Under the pieces are notes generated by a model. That model was not told the DNA's origin, ran no database searches, and worked only from the letters and a program-made list of their open reading frames with translations. Shown piece after piece: positions 14,201-63,571 of a DNA stretch of 64,000 nucleotides. Source of the DNA: Macrostomum lignano (taxonomy: Eukaryota); NCBI GenBank assembly GCA_002269645.1, contig NIVC01001283.1, positions 186,001 to 250,000 on the forward strand, given 5' to 3'. Numbering within the stretch: position 1 is the first letter of the stretch; each line of letters starts with the position of its first letter. The position numbers and the translations under genes are program-made.

Positions 14201-16178
14201 GGACTCGGTATGGGACTACGAGACCCTTGGGACTCGATATGGGACTACGAGACCCTTAGGACTCGATATGGGATTACGAGACTCTTGGGACTCGATATGG
14301 GATTACGAGACTCTTGGGACTCGATATGGGAATACGATACCCTTGGGACTCGATATGGGACTACGAGACTAGGGACTTGATATGGGGCTATGAGACCCTA
14401 TTTACTCCGTGTGGGACTACGAGACTCTAGAACTCCATATGGGACTATGACTTCAGGGACTCGGTGGGACTCTATGGACTATAAGACAGAGTATGGGACT
14501 GTAAGACTCTAGGGACTCAATATGGAAGTCTGGAGCTCGATTGGTGGCTATAAGACTCTTAGTATGTGTTGTTCTCTGTTTGTCTCTCCCGGCTTCTCCA
14601 TTGCTATCTTGAGGCTGTATTTGAAGCGTATGCTTCAACCTTTCATAGTATCTGGGTTAAGGTCCGCACAAAACAATCCCACGGGTGAAGCAAATGTGAG
14701 GCGACCCCAGCGTTATCAGAAAATGGGAACACAAATTTAAACGCACTCAATCCACTTGAGTGTTGGAGTGGAACGAAAGAAAATATATAAAATGCACTGG
14801 GCTGTTTGACAGATGGGAACCATTTTAATACTTAGACCGCCTGTGCCCCTGTGTCCGACTAATTTAGTGAGCTCTTTGTCTGAGCAAACCAAGTCTTATA
14901 ATAGTATATTTCCACAGTATGAGAAGCAGCTGTTTAACTTGAAAACTTCCCCCAAGGCGCCGGAGGGGTAGGCAGGTTTATTCCCCTCGGCACCACGCTG
15001 GGGAGGCGTGCTTCCCAGTGCTTTTGAAATCAACAACACATGATGGGCCTCTTTTATGAGCAGAAGGAGCTGGATTGAGTACAATGCACGGGTAAAGGGC
15101 GGAAGTAACTGTGACTCCTGAGCTAGCCAAATACCCGTACTTCGTCATCTGATTAGTGACTAGCAGGAATAAATCAACGAGATTCCCATCCCACGTATTC
15201 GAAGTTTAACTCCTTTAAGGCCGCCCTCGACCCTCCAGTGGCTTCATGTTCCCAATTATTATGAAAATCTTGTTGTTAGTTATATTGCATGGATTTACAC
15301 GAATTACACGGAAGTTCAGGGTCTACACGCACTGAATTTGTTAATAGAACGGTCAGAATTGCGAGTAGTTATAAAGATTGATTAAAACAAATATATTTTT
15401 ATAATGAACAAACAGCCTATGCCAGTGTTGCTCAAAAACAGATAAGAGATAAAAGGAGAGAAAAGATGCAAGAGAAAATAAGAGGCGAGATGAGACAAAC
15501 CTTGAGCGTACCGGATTGCTATTGTGAAGTTTCAAAGGACCCCCCTCCTCCCGAGGACAGAGAACATTTTTTTAAATCCCTGATCAATGTTTCATTTTGA
15601 TTATTTTCATTTCGCGTTACACAAAACATCGTAAAATCGAAAACGGGTCTAAAATAAGAGGGGCTAAGGCAGTGTCCGGCGGCAACTAAATATGGCCATT
15701 CCTAGAGGCTACGAGTTTCCTATTCCAACTTCGAGCAATTTTCGTGGAGGCGCCTCCCCGTAACCTTCCCGTCCCGTCCCTTCCTGTTTCCCTTCCCAAG
15801 CTTCCAACTTAGGTGGCAAATTGGAAGGCCAGAGAGTGCAGTTTGTTTTGATTGCCCCAAACCCGGAGACGCCGAGGAGACTCTTAAGGGCTTTTTATAT
15901 GAGCGCATCTTTATTAGGCCATCGGTTGAGTGAGCTGAGCAAAAATTTCCTTCTTTTGAGAAGAGCGATATGGGGGCCTAGGTTCAAGTTCGAATTCTCT
16001 TTATTCTTAATTTCGTTGCGTTCATAAACTCGACCTGCATTATAAAAAATCAACTTTCTCTCCTTTTTTGTTCAGCAGAGCAGGCTGAGAAGCTGTAAAA
16101 AGGCGCTATTTTTCTTTAAAGATTTCTGCTATTTCTCATGCACTGCCGCTGGGGAGGTTCAATTAACGGGCAATTCAG

Positions 16179-24140: not shown

Positions 24141-26209
24141 TAGATCCCACTCGGAATACAACTCAAAATCCCATAATTTGATTCTGATTGCAAGTTCTCA
24201 ACTTCCAGTTTCGCAGCGAGTGCAGTAACAAACAAAGTTTGCCAACTTGGTAATGAGCACTAAAGCAACGCATCAGCTGTTCATTTATTATTTTTCTACG
24301 AACTTCATCACCATGTTTCGATCGACCGTGCTGCAAAATCAATCTTGCTCTATTTTTTAGCTCGTAGACCATATTTTCCGCTTCACGCACGCATATGCTG
24401 CCCATACTACTTGCTATCGTCTGGCCAGGGAATCCCCCGCCACTTTATTATTTTTCGAACCCCCTTTTTCCCTGTCTGTTGCCCCCACCCACAGCAAATT
24501 GGCATTATATTTTGCCAGCGCGCTCTGTACCTGTGTACATATGCACAAATAGTAGCTATTTTGCCATATATAAGCTTGATATTTTGGTGCTTGAACTCCC
24601 AATTTTGCCATCCCAAAGATGCAGCTGCGAGGCCCCAGCCCGATTTACAGATCAGTCTGCTATTTTTTTGTTTAAATTCATTTTTATTGTTTGCAAGTCT
24701 ACAGGTGAAAGAGGCCCTAGCCGTAAAGTTTCCTAGTAAATGATTAATATTATTTTACCTATAATTAATATTATAATAATCTTTTCTAAGCGTCATCCCC
24801 GTGTGTTTTTAAAAAAGGCAGCCGTACAGGTACAGTGTACAATATGCAATGTACATAAGGTGCGTTTATATTCGCCTAGATACATATTTATGCATACAAC
24901 ATTTCGCATTTTTCAGCTCTGAATGTCAATTTAACTGCAAACAGTCAATTATTGCTTGCAGTTGAAAAGCTGAAATTGCAAAATTTGTAAGGCAAGCAAT
25001 TCATGCTCTATGATGAAGTGAAGCTCATGCCCCTCTGCTGTCATTTGTATTTTTTCGCTCATGTCCCGTAAACAAATGAGTGGCCTGCAAGGATCTTGTT
25101 TATTATATGCAGGTGCGTTTCCGCCGAAGCAGCTGATCTCCCATAATTATTCAATTCGTCTTGTACATGCAGCGGCCGTGCGCTGATCAACTAATATATT
25201 TGTGTTTATTTATTTTCTTCTATATTGTGCATTACCAGACCCTATGCATATGCTATTTTACAAGCCCTATATATGTATATATACTGTGTCATCTTGGGCC
25301 CCTGTGTGTGCGGCCTCGATTTTGCGTTACTCTCTAGTTGCAGCGTCCTTGTACTTTAGTTCTCCATGGCAACAGGACTCTGTTCCAATATGATCGAAGC
25401 CTGAAGCCCCCAGACCTGCCCGATCGCATTTACTTGACTGGGTCTGCAGTTTTCTCCCGAAACTTCCCCTTGCGACTGCCCAGGCTCCGCCGCTACTGAG
25501 GGCTTCTGATGGATTGAATTTATTGCAGTTTAATATTAAGTTTATTGGCTCTGTTCTATTCGATACAGGAGTGTACTGATTTATGAACATGAAAATCAAT
25601 CCATCACTAGCTTTCTTATTAAATGCGGAGTAGGCCTGCATCTTTTTTGCCCCCCCCCCCACTCTCTCGTTCTGTTTTGGTGTTTTTTTGCTACCTTTGA
25701 CTGAAATAAAATCATTGAATTAAAAAAATCAAGGCGCCTTATACTTTTGTTTCGATGGATGGCAGAGTGATAGCGGAGCGAAAGCAGACTAATAACAGAG
25801 CGAAAGCAGACTGATAGCGGAGCGAAAGCAGACTGATTGCAGAGACTAATAGCAGAGTGAAAAGCAAAAGTTAAAGCTCTATGTACGCTATTTGACGCAT
25901 TATATACATTTGCGAACACTTCGAGTCAAATGAACATTCTCCAAAACCCCGAGAGCTTGATCAACATCCTATACATATCAAGTCGAAAGATTTCTCAATC
26001 GTATATGGTCTGATTCAATCTATATAACTACGAACGAGAGTATTACCCACTAGCCATAGACAGAAAACTTTTATTTGTGGATCAACTGCGTAAAAAGCAT
26101 TGATAAGGTGACAGCAAATACAGAACCTACTATTGCAACTGAGCAAACGTCACTTAGCCAGATACGTCAACAGCATTGCTATATAACCAACATTGACAAG
26201 CCATCGCGA

Positions 26210-27388
26210 ATGGACTCCGACAAGTGTTCCGAGAACGACGCCTCTGGTAAATCCGAAGAACCGATGCCGAGGAAAAGCAGCACAGTGTCGCTCGGTGTCG
26301 ACGTTCCTCCTGATTGCACCATTGACTTAGCGGAGTTGGTGAAGCGGCTGCTCAGCTTCCAGCCTCCCAACGATGACTACTCTGTGCACCCAGAGCTGAC
26401 CGCACAGGACTGCCTCATCGTGTGCCACATGGCGATCAAGTACCTGAGCAGCAGCACCAGCGTCTGTGTACAAACGGACTCGCCCATCAACATTGTCGGC
26501 GACCTTCATGGCCAGTTCCACGACCTGCTGCGCTTCTTTGACCAGCTGGGCCAGCCGCCTCAGGCCAAGTTCCTGTTTCTGGGCGACTACGTGAACAAGG
26601 GCAAGTTCTCTCTGGAGGTGATTGTTCTGCTGCTGAGCCTGATGCTGATGTACCCAGACTCGGTCGTGCTGCTCCGCGGCAGCTCCGAGTGCGCCAGCAA
26701 ATGCAGTCACTACGGCTTCAAGGACGAGTTGATTGGCCGCTTCGGTGCCAACAGCGGCACCTCGGTGTTTGTCGGCTTCCTCCGCTGCTTCCAGTGGCTA
26801 CCGCTGGCCGCCATCGTAGGCGGGAAGCTGCTGTGCTGCCACGGCGGAGTGTCGCCGAGCTTCGAGCTGGAGCCGTTCGCGTCCGGTCAGCCGGAGACCA
26901 ACGCCGACTTGCTGAACAATAAGATCGAGCGGCCGTTCGAGCTGCAACAGTTCGGCCTGGCGTGCGACCTGCTGTGCTCGGACCCGATGAAGTCGCCAGC
27001 TCGGGACAACTTCGAGGTCTCCGTGCCGGAGGGAGAGCGGCTGAAGCTCAACTGGGTGACGCGCGGACGCAGCTGCTCCTATCACTTCTCTAAGGAGGCT
27101 CTGTCGGAAGTGCTAAGGATTCTAAACTTGTCTCTACTGATTCGGGGCAAGTGTCACGGCCCTGATGGCTTCAACGTGCTTTTGGACCGCCGCTGCGTCG
27201 CCCTAATCAGCTCCACCGACTACCTGGGCCAGAAAAAGAACAACGCCTCCGTGCTGCAGATTGACAGCAGCAACATCAACACGAGGAAGCCGGGCGCGTT
27301 CTTCGTTCTGTGCCCAGTCAAAGCTGCGGCGAAGCACCTGCAGCATCTCTGGCAGAGTGCTGGCGAGATTGCCGGTGAAAAGAAATGA
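26210..27388 (+). CDS. Intronless PPP-family (PP1-like) Ser/Thr phosphatase homolog A, predicted catalytically impaired, 392 aa
   Basis: First ATG at 26210 in ORF 26075-27388. Motifs GDLHGQ, FLGDYVNKG, LLRGSSE, CCHGG, CSDP. Confidence 0.88.
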   Translation: MDSDKCSENDASGKSEEPMPRKSSTVSLGVDVPPDCTIDLAELVKRLLSFQPPNDDYSVHPELTAQDCLIVCHMAIKYLSSSTSVCVQTDSPINIVGDLHGQFHDLLRFFDQLGQPPQAKFLFLGDYVNKGKFSLEVIVLLLSLMLMYPDSVVLLRGSSECASKCSHYGFKDELIGRFGANSGTSVFVGFLRCFQWLPLAAIVGGKLLCCHGGVSPSFELEPFASGQPETNADLLNNKIERPFELQQFGLACDLLCSDPMKSPARDNFEVSVPEGERLKLNWVTRGRSCSYHFSKEALSEVLRILNLSLLIRGKCHGPDGFNVLLDRRCVALISSTDYLGQKKNNASVLQIDSSNINTRKPGAFFVLCPVKAAAKHLQHLWQSAGEIAGEKK

Positions 27389-30272: not shown

Positions 30273-31451
30273 ATGGCAGCGGCAGACGCACAGGCTTGCA
30301 CGCCTGGTTGCGCCAAGATGCAGAGCGCCGAGAGTTCCGCCACTCAGGCACCAATGCTAGAAAATAGAAGCAACGCCTCTGCTGTTGTCATGGACCATGC
30401 TGACTTAGCGGAGCTGGTGAAGCGGCTGCTCAGCTTCCAGGCGCCCAACGATGACTACTCGGTGCACCCAGAGCTGACCGCACAGGACTGCCTCGTCGTG
30501 TGCCACATGGCGATCAAGTACCTGAGCAGCAGCACCAGCGTCTGTGTACAAACGGACTCGCCCATCAACATTGTCGGCGACCTTCATGGCCAGTTCCACG
30601 ACCTGCTGCGCTTCTTTGACCAGCTGGGCCAGCCGCCTCAGGCCAAGTTCCTGTTTCTGGGCGACTACGTGAACAAGGGCAAGTTCTCTCTGGAGGTGAT
30701 TGTTCTGCTGCTGAGCCTGATGCTGATGTACCCAGACTCGGTCGTGCTGCTCCGCGGCAGCTCCGATTGCGCCAGCAAATGCAGTCACTACGGCTTCAAG
30801 GACGAGTTGATTGGCCGCTTCGGTGCCAACAGCGGCACCTCGGTGCTTGTCGGCTTCCTCCGCTGCTTCCAGTGGCTACCGCTGGCCGCCATCGTAGGCG
30901 GGAAGCTGCTGTGCTGCCACGGCGGAGTGTCGCCGAGCTTCGAGCTGGAGCCGTTCGCGTCCGGTCAGCCGGAGACCAACGCCGACTTGCTGAACAAGAT
31001 CGAGCGGCCGTTCGAGCTGCAACAGTTCGGCCTGGCGTGCGACCTGCTGTGCTCGGACCCGATGAAGTCGCCAGCTCGGGACAACTTCGAGGTCTCCGTG
31101 CCGGAGGGAGAGCGGCTGAAGCTCAACTGGGTGACGCGCGGACGCAGCTGCTCCTATCACTTCTCTAAGGAGGCTCTGTGCTCCTCACTGAGATCTGTGA
31201 ATGCCGCTCTGCTGGTCCGTGGACGTGAGATCGCTAACGAAGGCTTCGCTCTGCGGCACGACCGTCTCTGCATCACCCTGTGCAGTGCGCCAGGGTACCA
31301 CGGCACGCGCGGTAACAAGGGAGCCGCGCTGCAGATCGAAGACAGAGAAGTTAATTTAGACAGACCCGGATCGTTTTTCGTTTTGACACCCAGATCTGAG
31401 CTGCTGTCGGAAAAGAACAGAAGCTTTCTGTATTGGCATTCCACCGCCTAG
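30273..31451 (+). CDS. Intronless PPP-family (PP1-like) phosphatase homolog B, predicted catalytically impaired, 392 aa
   Basis: Motifs GDLHGQ, FLGDYVNKG, LLRGSSD, CCHGG, CSAPGY...NKGA. Core nearly identical to homolog A. Confidence 0.88.
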   Translation: MAAADAQACTPGCAKMQSAESSATQAPMLENRSNASAVVMDHADLAELVKRLLSFQAPNDDYSVHPELTAQDCLVVCHMAIKYLSSSTSVCVQTDSPINIVGDLHGQFHDLLRFFDQLGQPPQAKFLFLGDYVNKGKFSLEVIVLLLSLMLMYPDSVVLLRGSSDCASKCSHYGFKDELIGRFGANSGTSVLVGFLRCFQWLPLAAIVGGKLLCCHGGVSPSFELEPFASGQPETNADLLNKIERPFELQQFGLACDLLCSDPMKSPARDNFEVSVPEGERLKLNWVTRGRSCSYHFSKEALCSSLRSVNAALLVRGREIANEGFALRHDRLCITLCSAPGYHGTRGNKGAALQIEDREVNLDRPGSFFVLTPRSELLSEKNRSFLYWHSTA

Positions 31452-35196: not shown

Positions 35197-38100
35197 GCAT
35201 CTTTAATTGGTGGTCTACTAGCGTTTCTACTTTTATGTCTGATTATCTGTTTGGTATGCCAAAAGTGCATATTAAATCGGTAAGAACCTTGGGCCTAATC
35301 CATGTTCTTGATATCCATTTACTCAGTATTTCAAATCATAGGACTTTGGTACTTTTCATTGTCTTAAGCTATCACTATGTTATAGAAGCTTACTGATGTG
35401 ATTCAGTAAACTCAATACAATTGCCTTTCTTGTCTGCTCTAATAATCTACCTACCCTCCCCTGTCTCCAGTGTCTACCCACCCTCCCCACCCTCCCGTGT
35501 CTATACCCATCCTCCCCACCCTCCCCACCCTCCCGTATCTACCCACCCTCCCCTGTCTGCAGTGTCTACCCACCCTCCCCACCCTCCCGTGTCTACCCAC
35601 CCTCCCCTGTCTCCAGTGTCTACCCACCCTCCCCACCCTCCCGTGTCTACCCACCCTCCCCTGTCTCCAGTGTCTACCCACCCTCCCTTGTCTACCCACC
35701 CTCCCCTGTCTACCCACCCTCCCCTGTCTACCCACCCTCCCCTGTCTACCCACCCTCCCTGTCTACCCACCCTCCCCTGTCTACCCACCCTCCCCCTGTC
35801 TTCCCCATGTTTCTTTTGTTTACCCACTCCCCTGTCTACCCACCCACCCCTGTCTACCCACCCTCTCCTTGCTTACCCACCCTACCCGTCTACCCACCCC
35901 ACCCGTCTACCCACCCCTCTGTCTTCCCATGTCTCTTTTATCTACCCAGCTTCCCCACTTTCTAGCTTCCTGTTCATCGCCCCTAAATCAATCAATTTTC
36001 AATTTCCCCCACCCGCCAGCCGGAGCGGATACTCGCAGCTGGAGAACGGGTCCAGCAGCCTGGACACGTCCGGCACCCTGGAGATCATGAACGCCAGCAT
36101 CAAGGAGGAGAGCGAACAGATCAGGCATTCGGCATTTCTAATGCTGCAATTTCACTTGAGAAATGGCCGCCAGTGGATAGTGAAGGACCACCTTAGCCAG
36201 CTGGGCACTAGAAGATCCTGGAACTGGTTCAGCGTCACTTCAGCTGGCGGTGACCGCTTCTGCCTGCTGCTGCTCAGCCCCTACGTGTCCGACCCGGCCC
36301 TCTGCCCGCTGCCTCTCAAGCAGAAGAGCTTCGCCTGCGTCAGGCAGTGGCTGGAAGGACTGCGGGTGACTGCATGGGCGGCACCCTCATTTGGGAGTGC
36401 TGATCAGAGTGACACCCTCCCTGAGGAATTCAGTGACTGCACCCTCCTTTAGCAATTGAGTGACTCCCTCCCTGAGGAATTGATTGACAACCTCCCTGAG
36501 GAATTGAGTGACACCCTCTCTGAGGAATTGAGTGACAACCTCCCTGAGGAATTGAGTGACACCCTCTCTGAGGAATTGAGTGACTCCCTCCCTGAGGAAT
36601 TGATTGACAACCTCCCTGAGGAATTGAGTGACACCCTCTCTGAGGAATTGAGTGACAACCTCCCTGAGGAATTGAGTGACACCCTCCCTGAGGAATTGGG
36701 TGACACCCTCCCTGAGGAATTGAGTGACACTCTCCCTGAGGAATTGAGTGACACCCTCCCTGAGGAATTGAGTGACACCCTCCCTGAGGAATTGAGTGAT
36801 TCTCTCCCTGAGGAATTGGGTGACACCCTCCCTGAGGAATTGAGTGACACCCTCCCTGAGGAATTGAGTGATTCTCTCCCTGAGGAATTGGGTGACACCC
36901 TCCCTGAGGAATTGAGTGATTCTCTCCCTGAGGAATTGGGTGACACCCTCCCTGAGGAATTGGGTGACACCCTCCCTGAGGAATTGAGTGACACCCTCCC
37001 TGAGGAATTGGGTGACACCCTCCCTGAGGAATTGAGTGACACCCTCCCTGAGGAATTGAGTGACACCCTCCCTGAGGAATTGAGTGATTCTCTCCCTGAG
37101 GAATTGAGTGACACCCTCCCTGAGGAATTGAGTGACACCCTCCCTGAGGAATTGAGTGATTCTCTCCCTGAGGAATTGGGTGACACCCTCCCTGAGGAAT
37201 TGAGTGATTCTCTCCCTGAGGAATTGGGTGACACCCTCCCTGAGGAATTGAGTGACACCCTCCCTGAGGAATTGGGTGACACCCTCCCTGAGGAATTGAG
37301 TGATTCTCTCCCTGAGGAATTGGGTGACACCCTCCCTGAGGAATTGAGTGATTCTCTCCCTGAGGAATTGAGTGATTCTCTCCCTGAGGAATTGGGTGAC
37401 ACCCTCCCTGAGGAATTGAGTGATTCTCTCCCTGAGGAATTGGGTGACACCCTCCCTGAGGAATTGAGTGATTCTCTCCCTGAGGAATTGGGTGACACCC
37501 TCCCTGAGGAATTGAGTGACACCCTCCCTGAGGAATTGAGTGACAACCTCCACGAGGAATTGAGTGATTCCCTCCCTGAGGAATTGAGTGACACCCTCCC
37601 TGAGGAATTGAGTGACAACCTCCCCGAGGAATTGAGTGATTCCCTCCCTGAGGAATTGAGTGACACCCTAACTCTTCTGCTCACCAAAATCGAAATCCCT
37701 GATCTATTCGGTTTCCTTGCAGCACGAATGCCTGCTGCTTGGCCAGCTTGACCTGATTGAGAAGCACTCCCGGTTCCTGCACATTGTGCCCTTCTGTCCG
37801 AAAGGCAGCGTGCGAGACTTCATCTGCCAGGTATGGATTAACCTGCTCTCCGCAGACACCAGACACCCCGCCCTTCCTCCGCAGACAAACCCGCTGTACC
37901 CGCACCAGACACCCCGCCCTTCCTCCGCAGACAAACCCGCTGTACCCGCCCAGACACCCCGCCCTTCCTCCGCAGACAAACCCGCTGTACCCGCACCAGA
38001 CACCCCGCCCTTCCTCCGCAGACAAACCCGCTGTACCCGCACCAGACACCCCGCCCTTCCTCCGCAGACAAACCCGCTGTACCCGCACCAGACACCCCGC

Positions 38101-42159: not shown

Positions 42160-43735
42160 AGTAGGTCCAAAATCTCCCCCTAGTAGCTCTAAAATCTAAC
42201 CCCTAGTAGCTCCAAAATCTCCCCCTAGTAGCTCTAAAATCTCACCCCTAGTAGCTCTAAAATCTCACACCTTTTAGCTCCAAAATCTCAACCCCAGTAG
42301 CTCAAAAATCTCCCCCCTAGTAGCTCCAAAATCTCCCCCTAGTAGCTCTAAAATCTCACCCCTAGTAGCTCTAAAATCTCACACCTAGTAGCTCCAAAAT
42401 CTCACCCCTAGTAGCTCTAAAATCTCACCCCTAGTAGCTCCAAAATCTCAACCCCAGTAGCTCAAAAATCTCACCCCTAGTAGCTCCAAAATCTCCATCC
42501 CTAGTAGCTCCAAAATCTCAACCCCAGTAGCTCAAAAATCTCACCCCTAGTAGCTCTAAAATCTCACCCCTAGTAGCTCTAAAATCTCACCCCTAGTAGC
42601 TCCAAAATCTCACCCCTAGTAGCTCTAAAATCTCCCCCTTGTAGCTCTAAAATCTCACCCCTAGTAGCTCTAAAATCTCACACCTAGTAGCTCCAAAATC
42701 TCACCCCTAGTAGCTCCAAAATCTCACCCTAGTAGCTCTACAATCTCACCCCTAGTAGCTCCAAAATCTCACCCCTAGTAGCTCCAAAGTCTCACCCCTA
42801 GTAGCTCCAAAATCTCCATCCCTAATAGCTCCAAAATCTCACCCCTAGTAGCTCCAAAATCACACCCCTAGTAGCTCCAAAATCTCACCCCTAGTAGCTC
42901 AAAAATCTCACCCCTAGTAGCTCCAAAATCTCCATCCCTAGTAGCTCCAAAATCTCAACCCCAGTAGCTCAAAAATCTCACCCCTAGTAGCTCCAAAATC
43001 TCCCCCTAGTAGCTCTAAAATCTCACCCCTAGTAGCTCTAAAATCTCACCCTAGTAGCTCTAAGATCTCACCCCTAGTAGCTCCAAAATCCAACCCTTGT
43101 AGCTCCAAAATCTTACCCCTAGTAGCTCCAAAATCTCACCCCTAGTAGCTCCAAAATCTCACCCCTAGTAGCTCCAAAATCTCACCCCTAGTAGCTCCAA
43201 AATCTCACCCCTAGTAGCTCCAAAATCTCAATTTCTAGTAGCTCCAAAATCACATCCCTAGTAGCTCCAAAATCTCACCCCTAGTAGCTCTAAAATCTCA
43301 CCCCTAGTAGCTCCAAAATCTCACCCCTAGTAGCTCCAAAATCTCACCCCTAGTAGCTCCAAAATCTCACCCCTAGTAGCTCCAAAATCTCACCCCTAGT
43401 AGCTCCAAAATCTCACCCCTAGTAGCTCCAAAATCTCCATTTCTAGTAGCTCCAAAATCTCACCCCTAGTAGCTCTAAAATCTCACACCTAGTAGCTCCA
43501 AAATCTCACCCCTAGTAGCTCCAAAATCTCACCCCTAGTAGCTCCAAAATCTCCATTTCTAGTAGCTCCAAAATCACACCCCTAGTAGCTCCAAAATCTC
43601 ACCCCTAGTAGCTCTAAAATCTCACCCCTAGTAGCTCCAAAATCTCACCCCTAGTAGCTCCAAAATCTCACCCCTAGTAGCTCCAAAATCTCACCCCTAG
43701 TAGCTCCAAAATCTCACCCCTAGTAGCTCCAAAAT
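42160..43735. repeat. 23-bp minisatellite AAAATCTCACCCCTAGTAGCTCC
   Basis: About 68 tandem copies between the convergent Slob-like and HIPK genes. Confidence 0.97.
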
Positions 43736-44192: not shown

Positions 44193-52217
<8,025 letters not shown>

Positions 52218-52531: not shown

Positions 52532-52690
52532 CATACATGCTCAACCGCACTTGATTTACACAACCATGCGACCTACTTAAGAAAAAAACCTAAGCAAAAT
52601 TAAAGTAATTTTGGGTGAACGGCAGGAGTAATTATGGCTGTATTATTACAACTAAATTCATCGTCATCTAATTAGTACTACAATTTGGCA
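52532..52690 (+). mobile_element. Partial copy C of the CATACATGCGCAACT-TIR family with 28S-derived cassette at 52613-52676
   Basis: Starts CATACATGCTCAACC (13/15 to the family TIR). Flank CCTAAGCAAAATTAA..TTTTGGGT is shared with the 60776 element. No matching second end or TSD found. Confidence 0.7.
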
Positions 52691-53069
52691 AATAAGCCAA
52701 ATTATGTAGAGTTTTTTAGACAATATTTCACAATTAATTTATGAGTTGAGTCTGAGCATTTTTTGCTATTATCCTTTTTTAATTCCAGTCATTGTCTATA
52801 ACAATGTCATAGAAATCTAAAGCCTAGCAATTTTTCAAAAAAAGTAAACAAAGGCCATCATACATGCGCAACTGCTGGCCAACCTGGCCGATCCGGCCAC
52901 CGTAAATCGTGGCTGACCAGGGGTAAGTCGCAAAATTGAGTCAACCAAAAACAGAAAAACACAAGAACCAAGAAAGGCAAGAGGAAAGCGAAAGAAAGAG
53001 CAGTTCAGGGAAAATGGTGAAGCAAAAGAAAAACAATTTGCAAAAGAAGCAAACTAAGTTGTAAAAATA

Positions 53070-53835
53070 ATCAGGTAAGTCGCAAAAAGGATCAGGTAAG
53101 TCGCAAAAAGGATCAGGTAAGTCGCAAAAAGGATCAGGTAAGTCGCAAAAGAAGCAAACTAAGTTGCAAAAAGGATCAGGTAAGTCGCAACAGGAATCAG
53201 GTAAGTCGCAAAAGAAGCAAACTAAGTCGCAAAAAGGATCAGGTAAGTCGCAAAAGGGTTAGGTAAGTCGCAAAAAGGATTAGGTAAGTCGCAAAAAGGA
53301 TTAGGTAAGTCGCAAAAAGGATCAGGTAAGTCGCAAAAAGAATCAGGTAAGTTGCAAAAGGATCAGCTAAGTCGCAAAAGGATTAGGTAAGTCGCAAAAA
53401 GGATTAGGTAAGTCGCAAAAAGGATTAGGTAAGTCGCAAAAAGAATCAGGTCAGTCGCAAAAGGATCAGCTAAGTCGCAAAGGATTAGGTAAGTCGCAAA
53501 AGGGTTAGGTAAGTCGCAAAAAGATTAGGTAAGTCGCAAAAGGGTTAGGTAAGTCGCAAAAGGATTAGGTAAGTCGCAAAAGGGTTAGGTAAGTTGCAAA
53601 AGGGTTAGGTAAGTCGCAAAAGGATTAGGTAAGTCGCAAAAGGATTAGGTAAGTCGCAAAAGGATTAGGTAAGTCGCAAAAGGGTTAGGTAAGTCGCAAA
53701 AAGGATTAGGTAAGTCGCAAAAAGGATTAGGTAAGTCGCAAAAAGGATTAGGTAAGTCGCAAAAAGGATTAGGTAAGTCGCAAAAAGGATTAAGTAAGTC
53801 GCAAAAAGGATTAGGTAAGTCGCAAAAAGAAGCAA
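53070..53835. repeat. 21-22-bp minisatellite GGTAAGTCGCAAAAAGGATTA inside element B
   Basis: About 35 tandem copies. Confidence 0.95.
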
Positions 53836-54004
53836 CTAAGTCGCAATAAGAGGGAAGTAAGTCACAATCAGAGGCAATCAAGGGGTAGTAGGTGCAAGTG
53901 TGGCAGGAGAGCAAAAACAGAATAGAAGCCTTCAACCACAGACAAGATCTTTGAAATCAGAAGCCCGCGTCAACAGTTTCCCATTGATTTCTTAAACTCT
54001 GGAG

Positions 54005-54260
54005 CAGGGGTTGGCAAACTCCGGCTCGCAAAGCCCCTCTATCTGGCCCTCGCCCCTCGGGTTCTTTGAAACTTCCTAACCAGCAAGGTTGGTGTCTCTT
54101 CAACTCTCATCTCTCTCTTCTTCTCTACCTTGCCTCTCCTCTTCTCTCTCTCCCCCCTTTTCCCTCTTCTCTCTCCTCTCATTTTTACTCTGCTCTCTTC
54201 TCCCCCTTTCTCTCTACCCTTTCTCCTCAATGCCCTCTTCTCTCCTCTTATCTTCAGCAA
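54005..54260 (+). mobile_element. hAT-like MITE end (CAGGGGTTGGCAAACT), copy 3, nested in element B, followed by a CT-rich tract
   Basis: Classic Charlie/Buster-type terminus; shares a motif with 16786 and 32527. Confidence 0.55.
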
Positions 54261-55609
54261 AAATATGTGCATATTTTCTTACTTCAAAGTAGAGGGAATG
54301 GAAGATTAAAGATAAGCAAACAGAGGAGAGGCGAGCGATGCGATGGGAGAAAAGATAGAAGAGGAGAGAAAAGCTGAGGGAGGAAAAAGAGATGAGAGAG
54401 AAGAGGAGATTAGAGGAAAGAGGAAAGAAAAGATGATGGATGAGATCAGAAGAGAGGAAAGAGGAAAGAGGAGAGAGTAGATGAGAGAAGAGAGGATAAA
54501 GAGGAGATGAGAGGAGAGTGAAGAGAGGAGAGATGAGAGAGTAGAAAAGAGAGGAGAGATAAGATGAGAGAGTAGAGTGGAGAGAGACGAGAGGGAAGAT
54601 AAGATGAGAGAGTAGAGTGGAATAGAGAGAGACGAGAGGAGAGATAAGAATGTAGAGAGGAGACAGAAGAGATAGGAGAGGAAAGAGAGGAGAGAGGAGA
54701 GGAAAGAGAGAAGGGATAAGGGATGAGAGAGAAAAGAAAAAGAGGATGAGAAGATTGAGGAATGGGGAGAATTTGCAAAGGCCTCAAATCTTAGTTTAAC
54801 ATGCATTACTCCCATCTTTGCCTTTTGCCTAACTTTTAACAAGTTTTTGTTTGAGCATGACTTCAAATTTAGAATCTATGCAAAAATAGTTCCGGGAATT
54901 AGAATTCAGTGGTTTAAAAATCTGTGGGTTTTCACAGCTTGTATCTCTACTAGATTCGTATTCTGCATCTGATGAGCCATCTGAATCAGGGCTCTCATCT
55001 TCCATGCCAAATCGTCTAGCAAATCGTTCTTGAGCTATAGGTCACACTGTATTCACTTCACTTACTTCTGGACATTCATGAATCATGACTTTTGTAGTAT
55101 GCTCACTACACTGTACTGACAATTTACTAATTGCTTCATGCCGCCACTAGATGACACTGATTAGCTGTTATAAAGATGCGGAATCTGCATGCAGCACTAA
55201 TTAGCTGGCGAGGCATTTAGCTTTAAAAATATAGTCATAGTTACTCCTGCCGTTTACCTAAAGTTTTTGCTTGGCTCTTTCATAGGTAAGTCGCATTTTT
55301 TATCGAAAACTAAGTCGCACGGCCAGCATAATTTCAGAAGTTGCGCATGTATGAAGGCCATGCCAAATGTGACATATATGTAGCCTCAATTGCAATTTGG
55401 TGGTGGCTCTACAAGGGCCTCTTAATGTATTTGCAAGCAAAACACCAAGCAGTTTTAAGCCAGTAGCAACACCAGGTTCTGAGTCTTCGACTCAAAATAT
55501 ATCTAGTAGTGAAATATCAGTTGCAATTTCTATAGCAGTTTCTGCCTCAACACCATCAAGTTTGGCTCTTGTAAGCACTGCTAATAGTCCTGTGTCAGCA
55601 ACATTGCCT

Positions 55610-58228
55610 GCCTGCTTGCTGTCCTTGCCAAAATGATAAAAATTACTGACTTCTACATAATTCAAAGATTTAGCCACTGTGCTAGCTCAAATGGTAGTGG
55701 AAAATTACAATGCCCAGGTTGATGACAATAGTGCGCTCCCAAGTAATGGACATGTCTATTATAATAGAGAACAAAATCCAAGAAAGAAAGAAAGAAATTG
55801 CAGTCAGAAAAGCAAGGAGAGCAATTCTCAATTTTACTAAACAAATGGAAATAGGTAAACAACTGATGCTTTATGAACATGCATGCAAAACCTTAAAATT
55901 TCACCTGTCCAGTGCGACTTAGTTTTGTCCAGATTTGCAACTTAGTTTCTCCCAATTGCGACTTAGTTTTGTCCAGATTTGCAACTTAGTTTCTCCCAAT
56001 TGCGACTTAGTTTTGTCCAGATTTGCAACTTAGTTTCTCCCAATTGCGACTTAGTTTTGTCCAGATTTGCAACTTAGTTTCTCCCAATTGCGACTTAGTT
56101 CCTTTCAATTGCAACCTAATTTTCACTTTGTATATGACTTTTCTTGCCTTTTTCTCTTTTCTTCTCTTTCTCTTTCTGCTTTCCCTTCTCTCTCTTTTCT
56201 TTCCTTTCTTTTCCTTTTCTCTGCCTCTCCTTTCTTTTTTCTCCCAGTTTTTTGTTTTTCACATTTTCAATTTTGCAACTTAACTTGGCCAGCCGCCATT
56301 TCACCTGTCTGGTTTGGATGGGTTGGGCATGTATGTTCATGAACATCAACATGCATACAAAAGACCATTGTGCTACAAAAGGCTTTGCCTCTGCTTCTAA
56401 AAACCTGGAAGCAACTGTGTCTGTGCTTTATCTTGGATTTGAATGCATTTAAGGTTCTGCAACTGCTGAAGCATGTTTGTAGATTGTCACCAATTGACTC
56501 ATCATTTTGGCCTTGTTGTTCTTTGGGACATAATAGTATATACTATAAATAGTGCATCAGTTATGGTTAAACTGGCTAGTTTGCTAATGTTAAAGGTTGA
56601 GCATCAACTTTGCCATGCATACAGAATCTATCTAGTTGTATCAGATGTAATCTATGCTAAAAATGCAGCCAAGCCTAAGAGCATTGCCTTAGGCTGATGA
56701 GTAAGAAGAAGCCACTGATGAGTTGAATGACATAGTCATAAGTGACAATGATGATACTAGCTCGTAATAGTATCATGGAAGATAATAGTGTTGAATAGGA
56801 TATAGATCAAGTAGATCAGAATGATGGCCATGGTTCTAGCATTGAGTTTAGCAGTGACATTTGAGTTGCATTGCAGCACCTTTGCAAAGTTGTCCTAACT
56901 TTTTAGCATAGCCCTACTTGCAAGTTGCAACGACACTCTTCAGACATTTGTGAAAGTACAGCATAACAAAGAGCTAGAGCTTATTCTAGACACAAAGAAA
57001 TGCTAGAAGTCCTTGCTGGACATGGTGCAACATTTTCTTCTATTCAAGGCTTTGGTATATAGTGCATGCTTCATCTTGGATTAGTCACCATTTTAGCAAG
57101 GAGACATTCAATAGCTATAAGAGCTATGCGCAGCACTTCACCCATTGAAGCTAGTGATCACTAAGCTTTTAAGCTGCAACTACAATTTGCTAAAGGCTGC
57201 TGCTACATTCAATTTTGCAGTGTAAGAGCTAAAAAGCCAGAACAGCAAGCTAGCTAAACAACTGCTTAAAGCTTTTGAGGAGCACTTCATTGAGCAATAG
57301 GGTAATATTGCTCTAGCACTGTGCACAACTTTTGAAGTGCAGGGTCTACATTGCTAATAGTAACTTGAAACTAAATATAGCAAAATACATTCATTTCCAT
57401 TGCCAACAAAATTTTGCTGCTTATTTTGTTGACTTTGCTGCTTTTGCTTCTTAGCAGCTGCTTATTGCTGCTAAGAATGGCTCAAGGCCAAGTTGAAAAG
57501 CTGGATAGCTGCTTTGATATACTAGTTGCATGCCCTATGCAATATCAACTTCAAGTCAAACAAGAGATTGGGCATGAGATTAAGTTCATATGGTCAATTA
57601 GCCAACTTGGTAAGTTGCTAATGACCCTTAACAGTTGCCTACTTTTGATCACACCAACCCTATTAGAATAAATGTTGAAAACTCACAGACGTGCGCTTTA
57701 GAAAAAGAGCCAAATTATTTTACAATTATTAGAAATCATTTTGTTAAAATCAAAATTCATTAACTTTTTGAAATCATAATTGAAATTTTCTGAAATCAAA
57801 ATTCAGAAAAACAAAGTTTAGTATGACCAAAACTTACTTTTTTACTCTTGATTTACTGCTTATGCAAAATAAAATACATGTATATATCACACAAATTAGT
57901 TTATTTTTAGCCACTTTTTTACACACTTCTACAAAGGTATTAGACCCTCTTCCATGTATATTTATTTGCTAAATAATTGCTATTTCAATTGAAAAATTGA
58001 AAAATTTTGAAAGTGCACTGGATGCCATCTACAATTTTACAAATTTTCCCATAGGACCCACCAGTAAGCATTGTTCAAGCAGAAAGGGTGTTCTCTGTTG
58101 TAGCAGTCTTGATAACCAAGTTTTGCTTTTATATGGGTGATAAAATGCTATCAAAGCTCTGCATGCTTCAAGCTTATTTTCAGAAGCAATCTGTGCTTTT
58201 ATCATCAAATTTCTTTGATCAGGAGTAG
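55610..58228 (+). pseudogene. Fossil hAT-superfamily DDE transposase, interrupted by element D
   Basis: Translations match hAT transposase motifs. QFSILLNKWK*VNN*CFMNINMH corresponds to FSLTLDEWTS..RRYMNINVH. INSASVM corresponds to TDGASVM. QLCHAYRIYLVV corresponds to LCxAHGIQLAV. LILDTKKC*KSLLDM corresponds to LILDxKTRWxSL. ELCAALHPLKL is present. PPVSIVQAERVFS at 58058 corresponds to PPTSVEAERAFS. Many in-frame stops. Confidence 0.85.
55878..56335. mobile_element. Internally deleted copy D of the element-B family, opposite orientation, inserted in the hAT ORF
   Basis: Ends CATGCATGCAAAACC / GGTTGGGCATGTATG. TSD TTTATGAA (55870-55877) / TTCATGAA (56336-56343). Both ends align to B's ends. 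Excision restores the transposase frame. Confidence 0.8.
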
Positions 58229-59180
58229 ACAATCCTATCAATGGTTATGACTATTTGAAGAGTAGTGTTGTTATGTCAACTTGTTGTGTGGTGTTTACCT
58301 AGAAAACTTAAAACTAAGTAGTTTTTGGGTAGATAGTTGTGGCCCCTATAGCCATGTAGGTTAGAATAGAACCAAAAGATCTAATTGCATAAAATAAAGT
58401 AAAACTATCAAGATCTAAAAACATTGGGTGCAATATTGTAAATGTAATTGGGTACCCAATTTACTGAGTTAATATAACAATTTATGAGTCATGACTAGGC
58501 CTTTTGATTACACATAGTTTGTTAATTAAATTTTGCATTTGAGACCTGTATTGTAGCCCTAGGCCCCTATGGACTATAGTGCAGCTTTGTCTAAAAATGT
58601 ACATTAACTAGTAATATATAGAAATATAAAATTTTCTAAGCCATTCTCATATATTTGAATTGCAAATTTGCAATCAAACTAGAACCTAGAAACATTTTGT
58701 AAAAGTTGCTTGAATTTGAAAGTCAATATTAAATATCTTTATTTCTTGTATTGCATTTGCATATTATAGAAGCTCATTTTTATGAACATGTATTTCCTCA
58801 TTTTATAATTTATATTAATAAAAAATAGAAAAGCTACTTTTGACAATTATAAGTTGGTATATTAGATAATAACAAATCAATTTTAGGGTCTTAAAAGGTC
58901 AAAACAGAGAATTAGGACCAAAATTAGATTATAGATCCATTCTAATCCATGAACATACAATCCTAGGATTTCTTAAAGGATTATCCTAGTGTGGTAGGTT
59001 GAGCCTCCCACAAACTGTTTGAAATTTATTTTTGGTTCCCGTTTTCTGGTCGTTTTTTGGCCATTGTCCTAGCCTAGGAAAGAACGTGGTCATATCTCAA
59101 ATATTTAAAAAGTTACAGACGTTTAAAGAAGACCACTTTTTTACCGTTTTTCGGTTTTGCACATGCTAAAAATAGGCTCG

Positions 59181-59192
59181 CTGGACACCCTA
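59181..59192 (-). mobile_element. Candidate right TIR of the hAT fossil (TAGGGTGTCCAG on the minus strand)
   Basis: TAGGGTG-type ends are common in hAT elements, and this one is flanked by TCCTAGGT. No left partner found. Confidence 0.3.
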
Positions 59193-60775
59193 TCCTAGGT
59201 TTGGCCCTCCTCCGTCCACCTTAAGGTGCTGCCTTGACGTCACCCTTCTGTTATCTCCCGCTCCCTAGTTCTGACCCTCGGCTCCCGGTTCTGGCCATTG
59301 TGCCCCTTTTTCTGTTCATTGTTAGTTTTGCCCATCTCCCCAGTGTTAATTTTTGCAAGCCCATAACTATGACTTTAAGGTCCATTTTATTTATTTTTTC
59401 TTCCTTTTTCTATTCGTTTGGTGCCACAAAATGTTCTGTTTAATTTTATAAATAATATGATGGGAGGGCTGCTAAATTCATGCATCTTTGTCGTTCTCTC
59501 TCTCTCTTTTTGTTTTTTTCGTCGCCTCTTTGTCTTCTCTCTTAACCATTATTATTGGATTCATTACCTGTGTGTACTACTAAGGAATTCATTTAATTTT
59601 TTAATAGTTGCTAGTTTGTAGTTGCCCTTGCGGCACCACCGTCTTATCCCTTGTTGTACTCATTGCATCATAATAATATTAGCTAACTTCAATTTAATTG
59701 GCCTTTTTAATAAATTAGGTGAACCAACTTAATTTTGTTGTTCAATTAATTAAAAGTCATAGTTTATCTTGAGTCATTTGCCCGTGGGTGTAAAATAACC
59801 CCGTCTCATCTTGAAGCAAGCTCTGAGACTTCAACATTCCGTAATACGTAAATTACAGTGGTGGCAGCACTACTCTACTAACAGTAATCAGTCAAGCAAT
59901 TGAAGTGCATTAACTACGGTGTCTAAAGACTCTCTGAATGCTCGCGCCTAACAAAGACCACTTGTCTACGACCGAAACTACCCTCTTCCCGGAATTGAGG
60001 ACCCTGGCAGTCGGAGTAAAACAGGAGGCAAACTTCCATTGTGATTCATCTGCGCGATCTTCTAGCTCCAATTTGTGCGAACGCAACGACGACTGGTTTG
60101 AAGAAACCCCAAGTTCAAAATCCGCAACCACCAAGTCTACCATAAATTTTCTTCCTCCGCCCCCACCTCATTAGGATAGAATTTTTAAATATCAAATCTA
60201 TGATTCTATACTAAAACTAGGCTAAGCCTAATTATATAAATATAGTCAGGCCTAATTATATACATATAGAATAATAATTTCATTGAAATAAATATGCAAA
60301 ATAGATCTATAATAGCCATATGATATAGGCTATAACAAAGGTCTACCTTTTAAATGTCATAGATACAAGGGGTATCCAAAAAGTCTGGACTTTCTCACAT
60401 CACTCTCTTTAATAGTCAGTAAAAGTAACAGCAACTGATTTATTTCATAGCAGCTTTATTTACAAATAACTCAATAAAAGAATTTTATACCACTAACTTT
60501 TCAAAAGTTATACTACCTTAACTGCAATGTTTTGTATTTTGGAATTGGTCAAATTAAAGCAAAGGAAAATCATCTTTAGTTTTTAAAAGAAAAATTAATG
60601 TAACAATCAAACCAACTAGGCCTACTCACTTCATTGAACTATTATAATCTTACTTTTTATTTTCTTGTCCATATCCTTACCTAATATAGTTTTTTTATTC
60701 TAGAAGTGACAACTAGGCCTATCATATCATAGGGGCCTATATGCATTTTAAATGCGCTTTTTAAGTATAACCTAT

Positions 60776-61054
60776 CCTGATTGCAGCGCATGGGCATTTT
60801 GGCGGACGGCGTCCGGCGCGGATCTAATACGGCGCGGCGCGGCGCGTACGGCGCGCGGCGATTAGTACGGCGCGGCGCGGTACTAATTAGATGCCGAGGC
60901 ATTTAGGCTTGATAAGACAGTCATAGTTACTCCTGCCGTTTACCCAAAACTGCGTTAATTTTGCTTTAGGGTTTCTTTCACAGGTAAGTCATTTCACAGT
61001 GTGGCGCAGGTTGTGTAGGCGTCTGGCGTACTTAAGCCATGCGCTGCAATAGGG
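60776..61054. mobile_element. 279-bp MITE A with 18-bp TIRs, 8-bp TSD and 28S-derived cassette at 60882-60945
   Basis: TIR CCTGATTGCAGCGCATGG versus revcomp CCCTATTGCAGCGCATGG (16/18). TSD TAACCTAT at 60768-60775 and 61055-61062. Confidence 0.85.
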
Positions 61055-63571
61055 TAACCTATAAGCTCTAAAGACACAGATTGTTAATCTATTTTTTAGA
61101 AGTTTGTGTTGATACTTTTTATTTTATTTCCAATTTTATTATATTGTGTTTTTGCCTGTTTTTTAGGCCTAGCTTATCTAGGCCCTACCATGGCAGGCAT
61201 GGCTTCTCTTATTAGGCCTAGTTTATTATAAATAAACTACTTTCCAGCTTCTAGTGTTGCATTTTATGCAGTTATTTATGCCACGCATTCAAAAGATAGG
61301 GGAAGGCCTATATAACATGAAGTCACCCTTGGTGTTGAAGTTATTTCTTTACAGAATTTGGGCCTTTAACTTAAGGCCAGGCCGCCAGATTGAGGGTCAA
61401 ATATAAAAAAGTAGATATCACAAATTTTTAGGCAGGAAAATTCGACCTAAAATTTTCGAGGTCGATTTTTACAACGGGAATATATATTGTTCACAAAAAC
61501 TCAACAGGATGCCGTCATACATTAGACCTAAATTACCGCACCTAGCCCTAGCGTCAGCCTAGTTAGCTTCAAGTCAGAGACACTATTAAACAAATGCAGC
61601 AGTCAGCACTGTGTAGATGTTAATTTATCTTATTCCTGGATTTTATATATCTTATTTAAGCTATATTAAGTCTTATTAAACCTTATAGCTTTTAAAAAGT
61701 TTTTGTACTGAGAATTTGAGCCAACAGCAGTTGTAGTTGGTTGCCAAGAGCTGCGCTTCGATTATTATATTCAGCAATGTTTAGCTTTAAATCTATGCAG
61801 AAATATAAAAACAATAATATTAGCTTATTTGTTGCAAAGTTTTAATTCAAACATAAAAAACATGCTGATTAACTTATTTAAGGTCCTGCTTCGACGAAAA
61901 CAGGTCTGATTTTTTATGTTTTGTTATATTACAGCAAATTTTTTACGTATTCAATATTGTGGGCGTAAGCTGCCCGGGCCGGACTGGACCTGTGGACTTT
62001 ACAACAAGGTACAGTGTAAAGTCCATCTCTAACAATAAATAAAGCTAGGGCCTTGCACTCCTGTGTGTATTGTCCCTGTGTGTACACGCATGACTGTGCA
62101 CGTATCTGATGATCGAATACGTACGTTACGTGGAATGGGCAGATAACGTCTCGATCGCCAGGCCAGTTGTGACAGCCGCTTTAAGTCGCTAGGATCGATG
62201 CACACAGCCCAGCCCGGACTCTAACTCACTAAAACTAAAAAAACCCGAACAAGCTGCTGCAGCAGGGGTGTAAATGTATGTATAGTCCTATCTTTTTAAA
62301 AGCAGTGCATGATGACAAGTTAAGCCTAGAGGATTTTCTTCTCGAAATGGTAGAACTTACATGGCACATCAGAATTATTTCTCAAATGTATTTCATGATT
62401 TTACTCCTCAGCTGAATAGGAGGAACATACGTAATGTACTGTATTGTGCGTTGCTATAATTCAAGCTGGCCATATGGCAATAATTACTTTTTGGAGTTTT
62501 TACAAAGAGAAATTAAAAAATGTTTGTTTTCTAATTATCTAGCCTGCAATAAAATTACATTTTAGCATTCATTACAGGCCTCGGACGAAAAATAAATTTC
62601 ATGAGACACAGACTGTACCGCCAAGCACATTTGGCATGGCAAGCAATTAATCGTGTATAATAAGTTGTCAGAGCAGTTTACATGTTATTACAAATTGGTT
62701 TAAAATTTAAACTGATTATTCTAACAATAGAGAAAGTTCAAAGTTCTTAAAATTTTTGCTCTAAGTGTTAGAGAATGACCCATACAATGACCTATTGCTG
62801 ACCGGACTAGCTGGGTGGCGGTTCAAAAATAAAACATTTTTAGCTTCCATAGAATATTTATAAATCAACTGCTGAAAAAACGAATAACTTTTGATGGTTC
62901 CGTAGATTGTCTCTAATGAAAACTGGAGTTGTCTCCAGATTACACGTATCTGATTGATAGCTACGGTTCAATTATGCAATAATCAAATAGAAACTCTTTC
63001 TGAGGTTCTTTTTAAGCTACTTGTAAATGCAGGCGCCTATCTGACTGGGCATTACACTTGTAGAAGATTGATTTTGAATCATAAATAATAGAAAGTAACT
63101 TTAATGGAAAGCCACTTTACCGGATACTGACCTACGACCTCGTGCAAGTAGGAAAAAACACATTTAAGCTGATGGACACTGATGGATGCCCTGGAGAATC
63201 AGCTGGATCCGCGCACTCTGCGATGCTGCGCTCTGCGTTTCGACGCAAACGACGCGCTTCCCCCAGCTGCCTCTGAGGGATGCGAGAGCCCCCAGTTCCG
63301 ACTCTGACTGGAGAAGCTGGATTTTTGAGAAGTGCAGCCCAAAGGCGTGTGTTCTGACACCTCCCCCCCTCGGCGACCACTCGTGGCCGGCGCGAGGTGT
63401 ATTTTGTTGTTGTTGTTGTTGCAAGCTGATATAAATAATAAAATGTAAATTAATATTGATATAATTTCAAATTGCGTATATGAATCAACAGGAAAGGTAT
63501 TTATTAAAATTAGACTAGATCGCATTAAAGATCGCTAATAGGGTTGCATACAGTAACTCAAACACAGATAT

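Follow-up and report, generated by a model that had tools for sequence, protein, structure and literature searches.

A hAT transposon family of the flatworm Macrostomum lignano contains, close to one element end, part of the 28S ribosomal RNA gene, which was captured once in an ancestor of the family and has been inherited by autonomous and non-autonomous members. The family is described here from a 64,000-nucleotide stretch of contig NIVC01001283.1 (GCA_002269645.1, Mlig_3_7), hereafter the window, whose coordinates equal the contig position minus 186000. The captured fragment, referred to as the cassette, is at least 64-67 bp long and lies on the sense strand, at a distance of 81-127 bp from the element end, within the 5' subterminal region. 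The best explanation, which we hold at about even confidence, is that a single old 28S capture has been kept within a cis-acting 5' subterminal region of these elements.

The 28S cassette and its hAT carriers

The cassette was located by an ungapped scan of both strands of the window with the 28S 64-mer, for which the 99.99th percentile of the background was 30/64. Four copies were recovered:

60882-60945, minus strand: cassette A, 54/64 matches, 109 bp inside the terminus of element A
55196-55259, minus strand: cassette B, 52/64 matches, 94 bp inside the terminus of element B
52613-52676, plus strand: cassette C, 50/64 matches, 81 bp inside the terminus of element C, in the sense orientation with the transposase gene
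6944-7007, minus strand: orphan cassette E, 44/64 matches

A sequence-only reading of this DNA had reported three copies. Its positions for A and C were correct, as was its count of mismatches in A (columns 12, 28, 34-39, 41 and 52, with seven of the ten falling within columns 34-41); its copy B is real, but the interval that it gave (55195-55258) is shifted by one nucleotide and scores 15/64, and E is a fourth copy. Elsewhere in M. lignano, the cassette lies 109 bp (element G) and 127 bp (element H) from the terminus. Every copy contains GGCAGGAG or GGCAAGAG. A terminal-side flank of approximately 50 bp is common to A, B and C, while E has the cassette alone in common with them. A profile made from the copies matched only A, B, C, E and a 28S-like fragment, F, within the window.

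The derivation from 28S helices 69-71 (H69-H71), as first proposed, is borne out by the scan scores and by matches to the Rfam family LSU_rRNA_eukarya, the large-subunit (LSU) rRNA. Nothing in the window matched Rfam at gathering thresholds; at E-value thresholds, copy A matched the LSU model at positions ~2243-2314, covering the H69 and H71 hairpins (25.5 bits, E 2e-4), and copy B matched at 16 bits (E 0.08). The sole other Rfam match in the cassette elements, to the long non-coding RNA MEG8_3 (E 9.8), is at chance level. The cassette is thus a 28S-derived segment with significant similarity to LSU rRNA alone. Chance similarity was rejected, as scores of 44-54/64 compare with a background maximum of about 30. 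A further ~17 bp of 28S may be present upstream, where 9-10 of the 17 bases match, a marginal agreement only.

The elements concerned, in the window and at a second M. lignano locus (L056), are as follows:

52532..52545, plus strand: 5' terminal inverted repeat (TIR) of element C, CATACATGCTCAAC, located by pattern search
52847..58186, plus strand: decayed transposase gene of element C, with many stops and frameshifts, B being inserted at 52859 and D at 55878
52859..55353, minus strand: element B, non-autonomous hAT of 2495 bp, inserted in the BED-finger region of C
53055..53850, plus strand: minisatellite within B, ~38 units of 20-21 bp derived from the subterminal motif GGTAAGTCGCA
55878..56335, no strand: element D, a 458-bp MITE (miniature inverted-repeat transposable element) of the family, without cassette, nested in the C transposase gene
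60776..61054, minus strand: element A, MITE of 279 bp whose TIRs, CCTGATTGCAGCGCATGG / CCCTATTGCAGCGCATGG, are of a second type
L056 18871-19168: element G, 298 bp, with A-type TIRs and the perfect target duplication ATGGCTGC
L056 19845-20141: element H, 297 bp, with the B-type 14-mer TIR at both ends

The sequence-only reading had placed the cassette in DNA transposons bounded by TIRs and target-site duplications, and this holds: the 8-bp target duplications are perfect in A, B and G and match at 7/8 positions in D and H. Element B has perfect TIRs (14/14, CATACATGCGCAAC) and is flanked by AAGGCCAT at 52851-52858 and 55354-55361, and element A is flanked by TAACCTAT at 60768-60775 and 61055-61062. 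The TIR of the A/G type is 18 bp long, with 15/18 positions matching. The TIRs of D are CATGCATGCAAAACC and CATACATGCCCAACC, its duplication reads TTTATGAA/TTCATGAA (TTYATGAA), and it contains TGCGACTTAG repeats; the duplication of H reads GGGGGGAG/AGGGGGAG. The 14-mer at the 5' end of C recurs, with one difference, at the ends of B in the window and at those of H in L056. Elements A, G, H and D have termini or the subterminal module in common with C, and all four have the features of MITEs, being shorter than 600 bp, non-coding, bounded by TIRs and target duplications, and related to an autonomous element. The 8-bp duplications, the short TIRs and the homology to a BED/DUF659/dimerisation transposase assign the carriers to the hAT superfamily, and the short subterminal repeat of this family is GGTAAGTCGCA.

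The transposase homology comes from element C, which was first taken for another carrier of the same kind. It does carry the cassette, but rather than a small element this is the 5' end of a dead autonomous hAT copy of ~6 kb, with B and D nested inside it, as its gene is collinear with a hAT transposase yet stop-ridden and interrupted by both insertions. C is the only autonomous copy that was seen. A stop-free open reading frame (ORF) of 74 amino acids at 56473-56694 matches BED/DUF659 proteins (E 6.4e-7 among 1.84e9 representative proteins). Through it a 623-residue protein with zf-BED, DUF659 and Dimer_Tnp_hAT domains (P0035) was found, to which the pseudo-ORF of C is similar at E 1e-31 (BLASTP). 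With B and D removed, the tblastn high-scoring segments of C fall in collinear order along P0035 residues 12-618, covering residues 12-44, 159-210, 212-266, 336-466, 549-582 and 577-618. Decay is extensive, with 19 stops per 294 codons in the stretch tested; the BED-finger region is broken by B and the catalytic region by D. A probable intron lies at ~57670-58055. The inferred transposase start follows the cassette, which has the sense orientation, by ~140-170 bp. The hAT assignment of C is transitive via P0035, because direct Pfam scans of its decayed translation (three frames and a C-terminal peptide) gave no match. Word-index protein searches with the C transposase (294 residues, and an 865-residue multi-frame translation at E<=10) and a PDB sequence search were likewise negative. 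For the 3' end of C, the best TIR-like candidate (58513-58551) agrees only weakly and lacks a matching target duplication.

Additional repeats occur inside two of the smaller elements. Within B, a CT-rich stretch (54100-54260) stands opposite a GA-rich one (54320-54750), forming a long imperfect inverted repeat whose matches to microRNA precursors in Rfam (54100-54750) are at chance level. The interior of A (60800-60885) contains GC-rich CGGCGCGG repeats and a palindrome with 7-bp stems (TTAGTAC...GTACTAA) that borrows the final bases of the cassette; at the corresponding position, G has the 3' subterminal motif of the family instead.

No cassette copy was present in the first 135 kb from other loci of M. 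lignano. A further 84 kb, from loci around a paralogue of a metallophosphoesterase (Metallophos) gene, yielded G, H and H', the last being a 99.3%-identical copy of H at the same site on a second contig (L057 19745-20042). In L056, G and H are separated by 680 bp, and the cassette of G is only 1 nt away from that of A. G is missing from L057, whose flanks there are 91-99% identical in a locus that is ~99% identical overall; rearrangement of the interval leaves no clean empty site for G on that contig. The presence of H on both of these 99%-identical contigs, and of G on only one, suggests that the A/G subfamily was recently active. In total, seven cassette copies (counting H' separately) and D were found, clustered in two places, across distinct M. 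lignano sequence totalling ~280 kb. The family is therefore dispersed, with at least two TIR types (A/G versus B/H/C) on one subterminal module.

Single origin and uneven divergence of the cassette

At columns 12, 28, 35, 36, 37 and 41, all six independent copies have the same non-28S state, from which it follows that the capture happened once, as the sequence-only reading had concluded. The single change that it had regarded as diagnostic of the elements does not have that value. When metagenome contigs were scanned for a 5' block having A at column 12, 47 loci were recovered, of which nearly all are genuine 28S genes of unknown eukaryotes and none resembles the transposon cassette; the 28S genes with this base often have a compensating C30T. 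G12A thus occurs as natural 28S variation in many eukaryotes and is a marker of a common source, not necessarily a mutation that arose within the element.

The divergence of the cassette is not uniform. When the minimum number of changes per column was compared with 5000 column permutations, changes in A, B and C were found to cluster in columns 28-39 (24/5000 permutations as extreme); clustering in columns 24-42 gave 7/5000 with E added and 25/5000 with six copies. The resulting p of about 0.005 overstates independence, because the copies share ancestry. Divergence between pairs of copies averages 38% in columns 28-41 compared with 15% elsewhere. Among the lineages represented by A, H, B and C, identity is 89% in the 5' block (columns 1-27) and 83% in the 3' block (columns 42-67), whereas it is 65% in the middle (columns 28-41), equal to the 65% of the adjoining subterminal sequence (columns -50 to -1), and 27% past column 67. 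The contrast between conserved ends and a divergent middle noted in the first reading is therefore real, but the special erosion of the middle that it envisaged is not: the middle has changed like the subterminal background, and the flanking blocks are the unusual part.

Homology among family members ends 2-3 bp past the cassette, and deletion derivatives that keep this end of the element therefore keep the cassette. Any constraint on the blocks acts on primary sequence, and the rRNA helices are not maintained. In the native H69/H71 helices, 50% of cells are paired, a proportion that shuffles and slid controls match, and compensatory changes are lacking; all six copies have lost pairs 12-30 and 31-35, and five of the six have lost pair 14-28.

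Retention of the cassette and rival explanations

Under the reading that we favour, the 28S fragment would have been gained by ordinary capture of host DNA, either by template switching during gap repair or by insertion of a dispersed fragment similar to F. Its upstream part and the middle 14 bp would then have drifted at the rate of the remaining subterminal module, while selection among the lineages that transpose would have preserved the blocks GGTAAACGGCAGGAGTAACTATGACT and AAATGCCTCGNCANCTAATTAGTAC. The blocks would now be a putative cis sequence, either a binding site for transposase or a host factor, or part of a promoter or 5' untranslated region (UTR). Such a cis role is the likely reason for the retention of the two blocks, and the coincidence of the drifting middle with the target site of R2 retrotransposons and the homing endonuclease I-PpoI is taken to be incidental. 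The cassette is retained across two TIR types and in the recently inserted G.

Several observations weigh against this reading. Element D transposed without a cassette, which implies that the cassette is not needed at both ends and perhaps not at all. Copy E exists outside any recognisable element; its flanks are unrelated to those of A, B and C, and neither a TIR nor a target duplication was found around it; it has B-specific states at columns 1, 33, 52 and 55. The divergence pattern comes from only six independent copies of shared ancestry. That the 5' block is related to the family's subterminal repeat (GGTAAACGGCA versus GGTAAGTCGCA, 8/11) was considered and rejected, the match being within chance. 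Gene conversion from M. lignano rDNA is also conceivable; the A that they share at column 12, compared with G in F, speaks against it.

The cassette could also be a functionless passenger, its block pattern reflecting a few related copies, mutation-rate differences in an AT-rich middle or one complex ancestral mutation. We regard this as possible, although somewhat unlikely. Six of the ~8 ancestral differences from 28S fall in columns 28-41 and might represent one or two events, and the 1-nt difference between A and G reduces the truly independent lineages to ~4-5. The mobility of D is as expected of a passenger, and a 2024 review of sequences derived from ribosomal DNA (rDNA) in transposable elements regards most such modules as modular reshuffling without benefit to the element (PMC10946416). 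However, it is also in the middle that the copies vary most among themselves (38% versus 15%), so the effect is not ancestral alone, and the blocks exceed the adjacent subterminal sequence in conservation across both TIR types.

The remaining alternatives invoke the 28S target itself. The sequence-only reading had suggested an rDNA-targeting ancestor that captured the flank of its own target; two 28S insertions ~90 bp apart, for example, could have been mobilised jointly (macrotransposition) and have trapped the 28S piece between them. Mobile elements are known to insert often in this region of 28S, among them R2 and, at a TTAA, Pokey, and F is a second, independent fragment of it in the same 64-kb window. 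Nevertheless, such an origin is improbable: all five duplicated target sites (AAGGCCAT, TAACCTAT, TTYATGAA, ATGGCTGC and GGGGGGAG) are non-rDNA and mutually different, element sequence lies on both sides of the 28S piece, no internal TIR was seen beside the cassette, and Rfam gave no LSU or small-subunit (SSU) rRNA match flanking any element. Another suggestion was that the blocks are kept as a decoy or binding site by an rDNA-specific endonuclease (R2 or I-PpoI-like) or an rDNA-binding factor, the cleavable core having been lost by selection or by repeated cutting with imprecise repair; we consider this very unlikely. R2 is known in Platyhelminthes (PMC13188248), and its footprints extend from -37 to -25, -21 to -15 and -2 to +20, in total about -40 to +20 (PMC11204384). 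A nick between columns 36 and 37 would put the 5' block at -35 to -10 and the 3' block at +6 to +28; the overlap of both blocks with the published footprints (PMC11204384) is a geometric coincidence and the one point that speaks for the R2/I-PpoI ideas. The published footprint includes -2 to +6, which is not conserved in the cassette. F also has a 2-nt deletion and three substitutions around the cut site, but the enrichment of changes there is not significant. The presence of R2 or a homing endonuclease in M. lignano is without support, the benefit to a hAT element is not apparent, and a few transposon copies cannot face host-level selection for a decoy. It would be surprising if the blocks were bound by an rDNA-specific protein (R2 or a nucleolar factor), such that the hAT family carried a cleavage-dead R2 landing pad. 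In a related reading, an R2-type endonuclease cutting outside rDNA would have eroded the core in the cassettes and in F. Least probable, and hardly to be expected, is an action at the RNA level, as a mimic of H69 or as 28S antisense. Since the cassette precedes the transposase ORF in the sense orientation, it could be part of a 5' UTR, but the H69 function put forward from the sequence is not supported, native H69/H71 pairing being no better than in shuffles (50%) and showing no compensation, and the orientation in C yields sense, not antisense, RNA.

Other 28S pieces, neighbouring features and known systems

A further piece of the same 28S region lies in the window:

15012..15205 (end approximate), plus strand: 28S-like fragment F, LSU model positions 2199 to ~2335

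F scores 33.6 bits in Rfam (E 2.8e-4) and E 1.3e-4 with nhmmer, carries G at column 12, unlike the cassette copies, and has insertions of 33 and 6 nt in addition to the changes around TTAAGG/TAGC described above. As it lies outside any recognisable transposon, it is an independent dispersed rDNA fragment. Two unrelated fragments per 64 kb hint that this ~100-nt 28S region is copied elsewhere unusually often. About 130 nt beyond E on the same strand (6806-6815, minus), a second GGAGTAACTA 10-mer occurs within CGAGGCGGATTGCTGGAGTAACTAAGG and may be a second partial copy of the cassette.

Pieces of 28S were also observed in metagenome contigs of unknown eukaryotes. One contig (L044, 32-688) has the 28S piece GCGGGTAAACGGCAGGAGTAACTAT inside a ~51-bp tandem repeat, and another (L017, 1088-1200) has tandem partial 28S duplications with the same piece; in both, the similarity to 28S stops after CTAT, as in copy E. 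In other contigs, 28S is interrupted at or beside CTCTTAAGG (L008, L010, L013/L050, L020, L025, L034 and L035/L053) or just upstream of GGGTAAACGG (L045). Insertions of the R2 type or group I introns are the likely cause of these interruptions.

Positions 640-51000 of the window are dense with long minisatellites of 20-45-bp units (e.g., 22075-24174, 36407-37669, 42160-43735 and 48221-50994), several of which make long spurious ORFs. Two tandem intron-less genes for calcineurin-like phosphoesterases (Metallophos) lie at 26075-27388 and 30273-31451, both on the plus strand. A protein-kinase ORF at 51048-52184 (minus) has its domain cut at 203/263, beside a 2.8-kb minisatellite, and the pairing of kinase and Metallophos genes is found again at two paralogous loci (L003 and L004).

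The family resembles known hAT elements (Ac/Ds, hobo, Hermes and Tol2) in its 8-bp duplications, short TIRs and short subterminal repeats (GGTAAGTCGCA), in a transposase with BED, RNase-H-like and hAT-dimerisation regions (here by homology of a decayed gene), and in non-autonomous derivatives that keep just the terminal ~150-200 bp of the autonomous copy. It differs from them in that its 5' subterminal region has a 28S piece as its best-conserved part and that two TIR types occur on the same subterminal module. The R2 target in 28S corresponds to the cassette in that the latter spans TTAAGG/TAGC and its blocks overlap the R2 footprints (PMC11204384), but the nick site is mutated in every cassette copy and R2 sequence is absent from the elements. 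Pack-MULE and Pack-TYPE elements likewise spread host gene fragments captured between TIRs; their fragments, however, are usually internal, variable among elements and not conserved across subfamilies, whereas the M. lignano cassette is one short fragment in a subterminal cis region that is retained across subfamilies.

Mobile elements with rDNA-derived sequences listed in the 2024 review include the 5S-derived short interspersed elements (SINEs), Cassandra/Ajax, SINE28 (28S) and the piggyBac element Pokey (intergenic spacer, IGS), with SINE28 the sole 28S case and Pokey the sole DNA transposon (PMC10946416). SINE28, the 5S SINEs and Cassandra are alike in carrying rRNA-gene fragments (PMC10946416, Table 2), but they are retroelements, and the 5S piece, where present, serves as an RNA polymerase III promoter, in contrast to a cut-and-paste family whose 28S piece has no known promoter function. 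Pokey of Daphnia has rDNA-derived sequence upstream of the transposase and MITE derivatives (PMC10946416; PMC3849761); it is a piggyBac element with TTAA targets that inserts in 28S and carries IGS repeats, not 28S coding sequence, whereas the M. lignano family is hAT and its observed insertions are all outside rDNA. A literature search, which did not cover Repbase or Dfam, returned no report of a hAT element or MITE with a 28S fragment.

The elements described here add a clear case of a DNA transposon with 28S coding sequence, in an apparently recently active hAT family of the flatworm model M. lignano. If the conserved blocks are neutral, the cassette is an ordinary capture; if they are required in cis, it would represent the exaptation of ribosomal DNA as a transposon end sequence.

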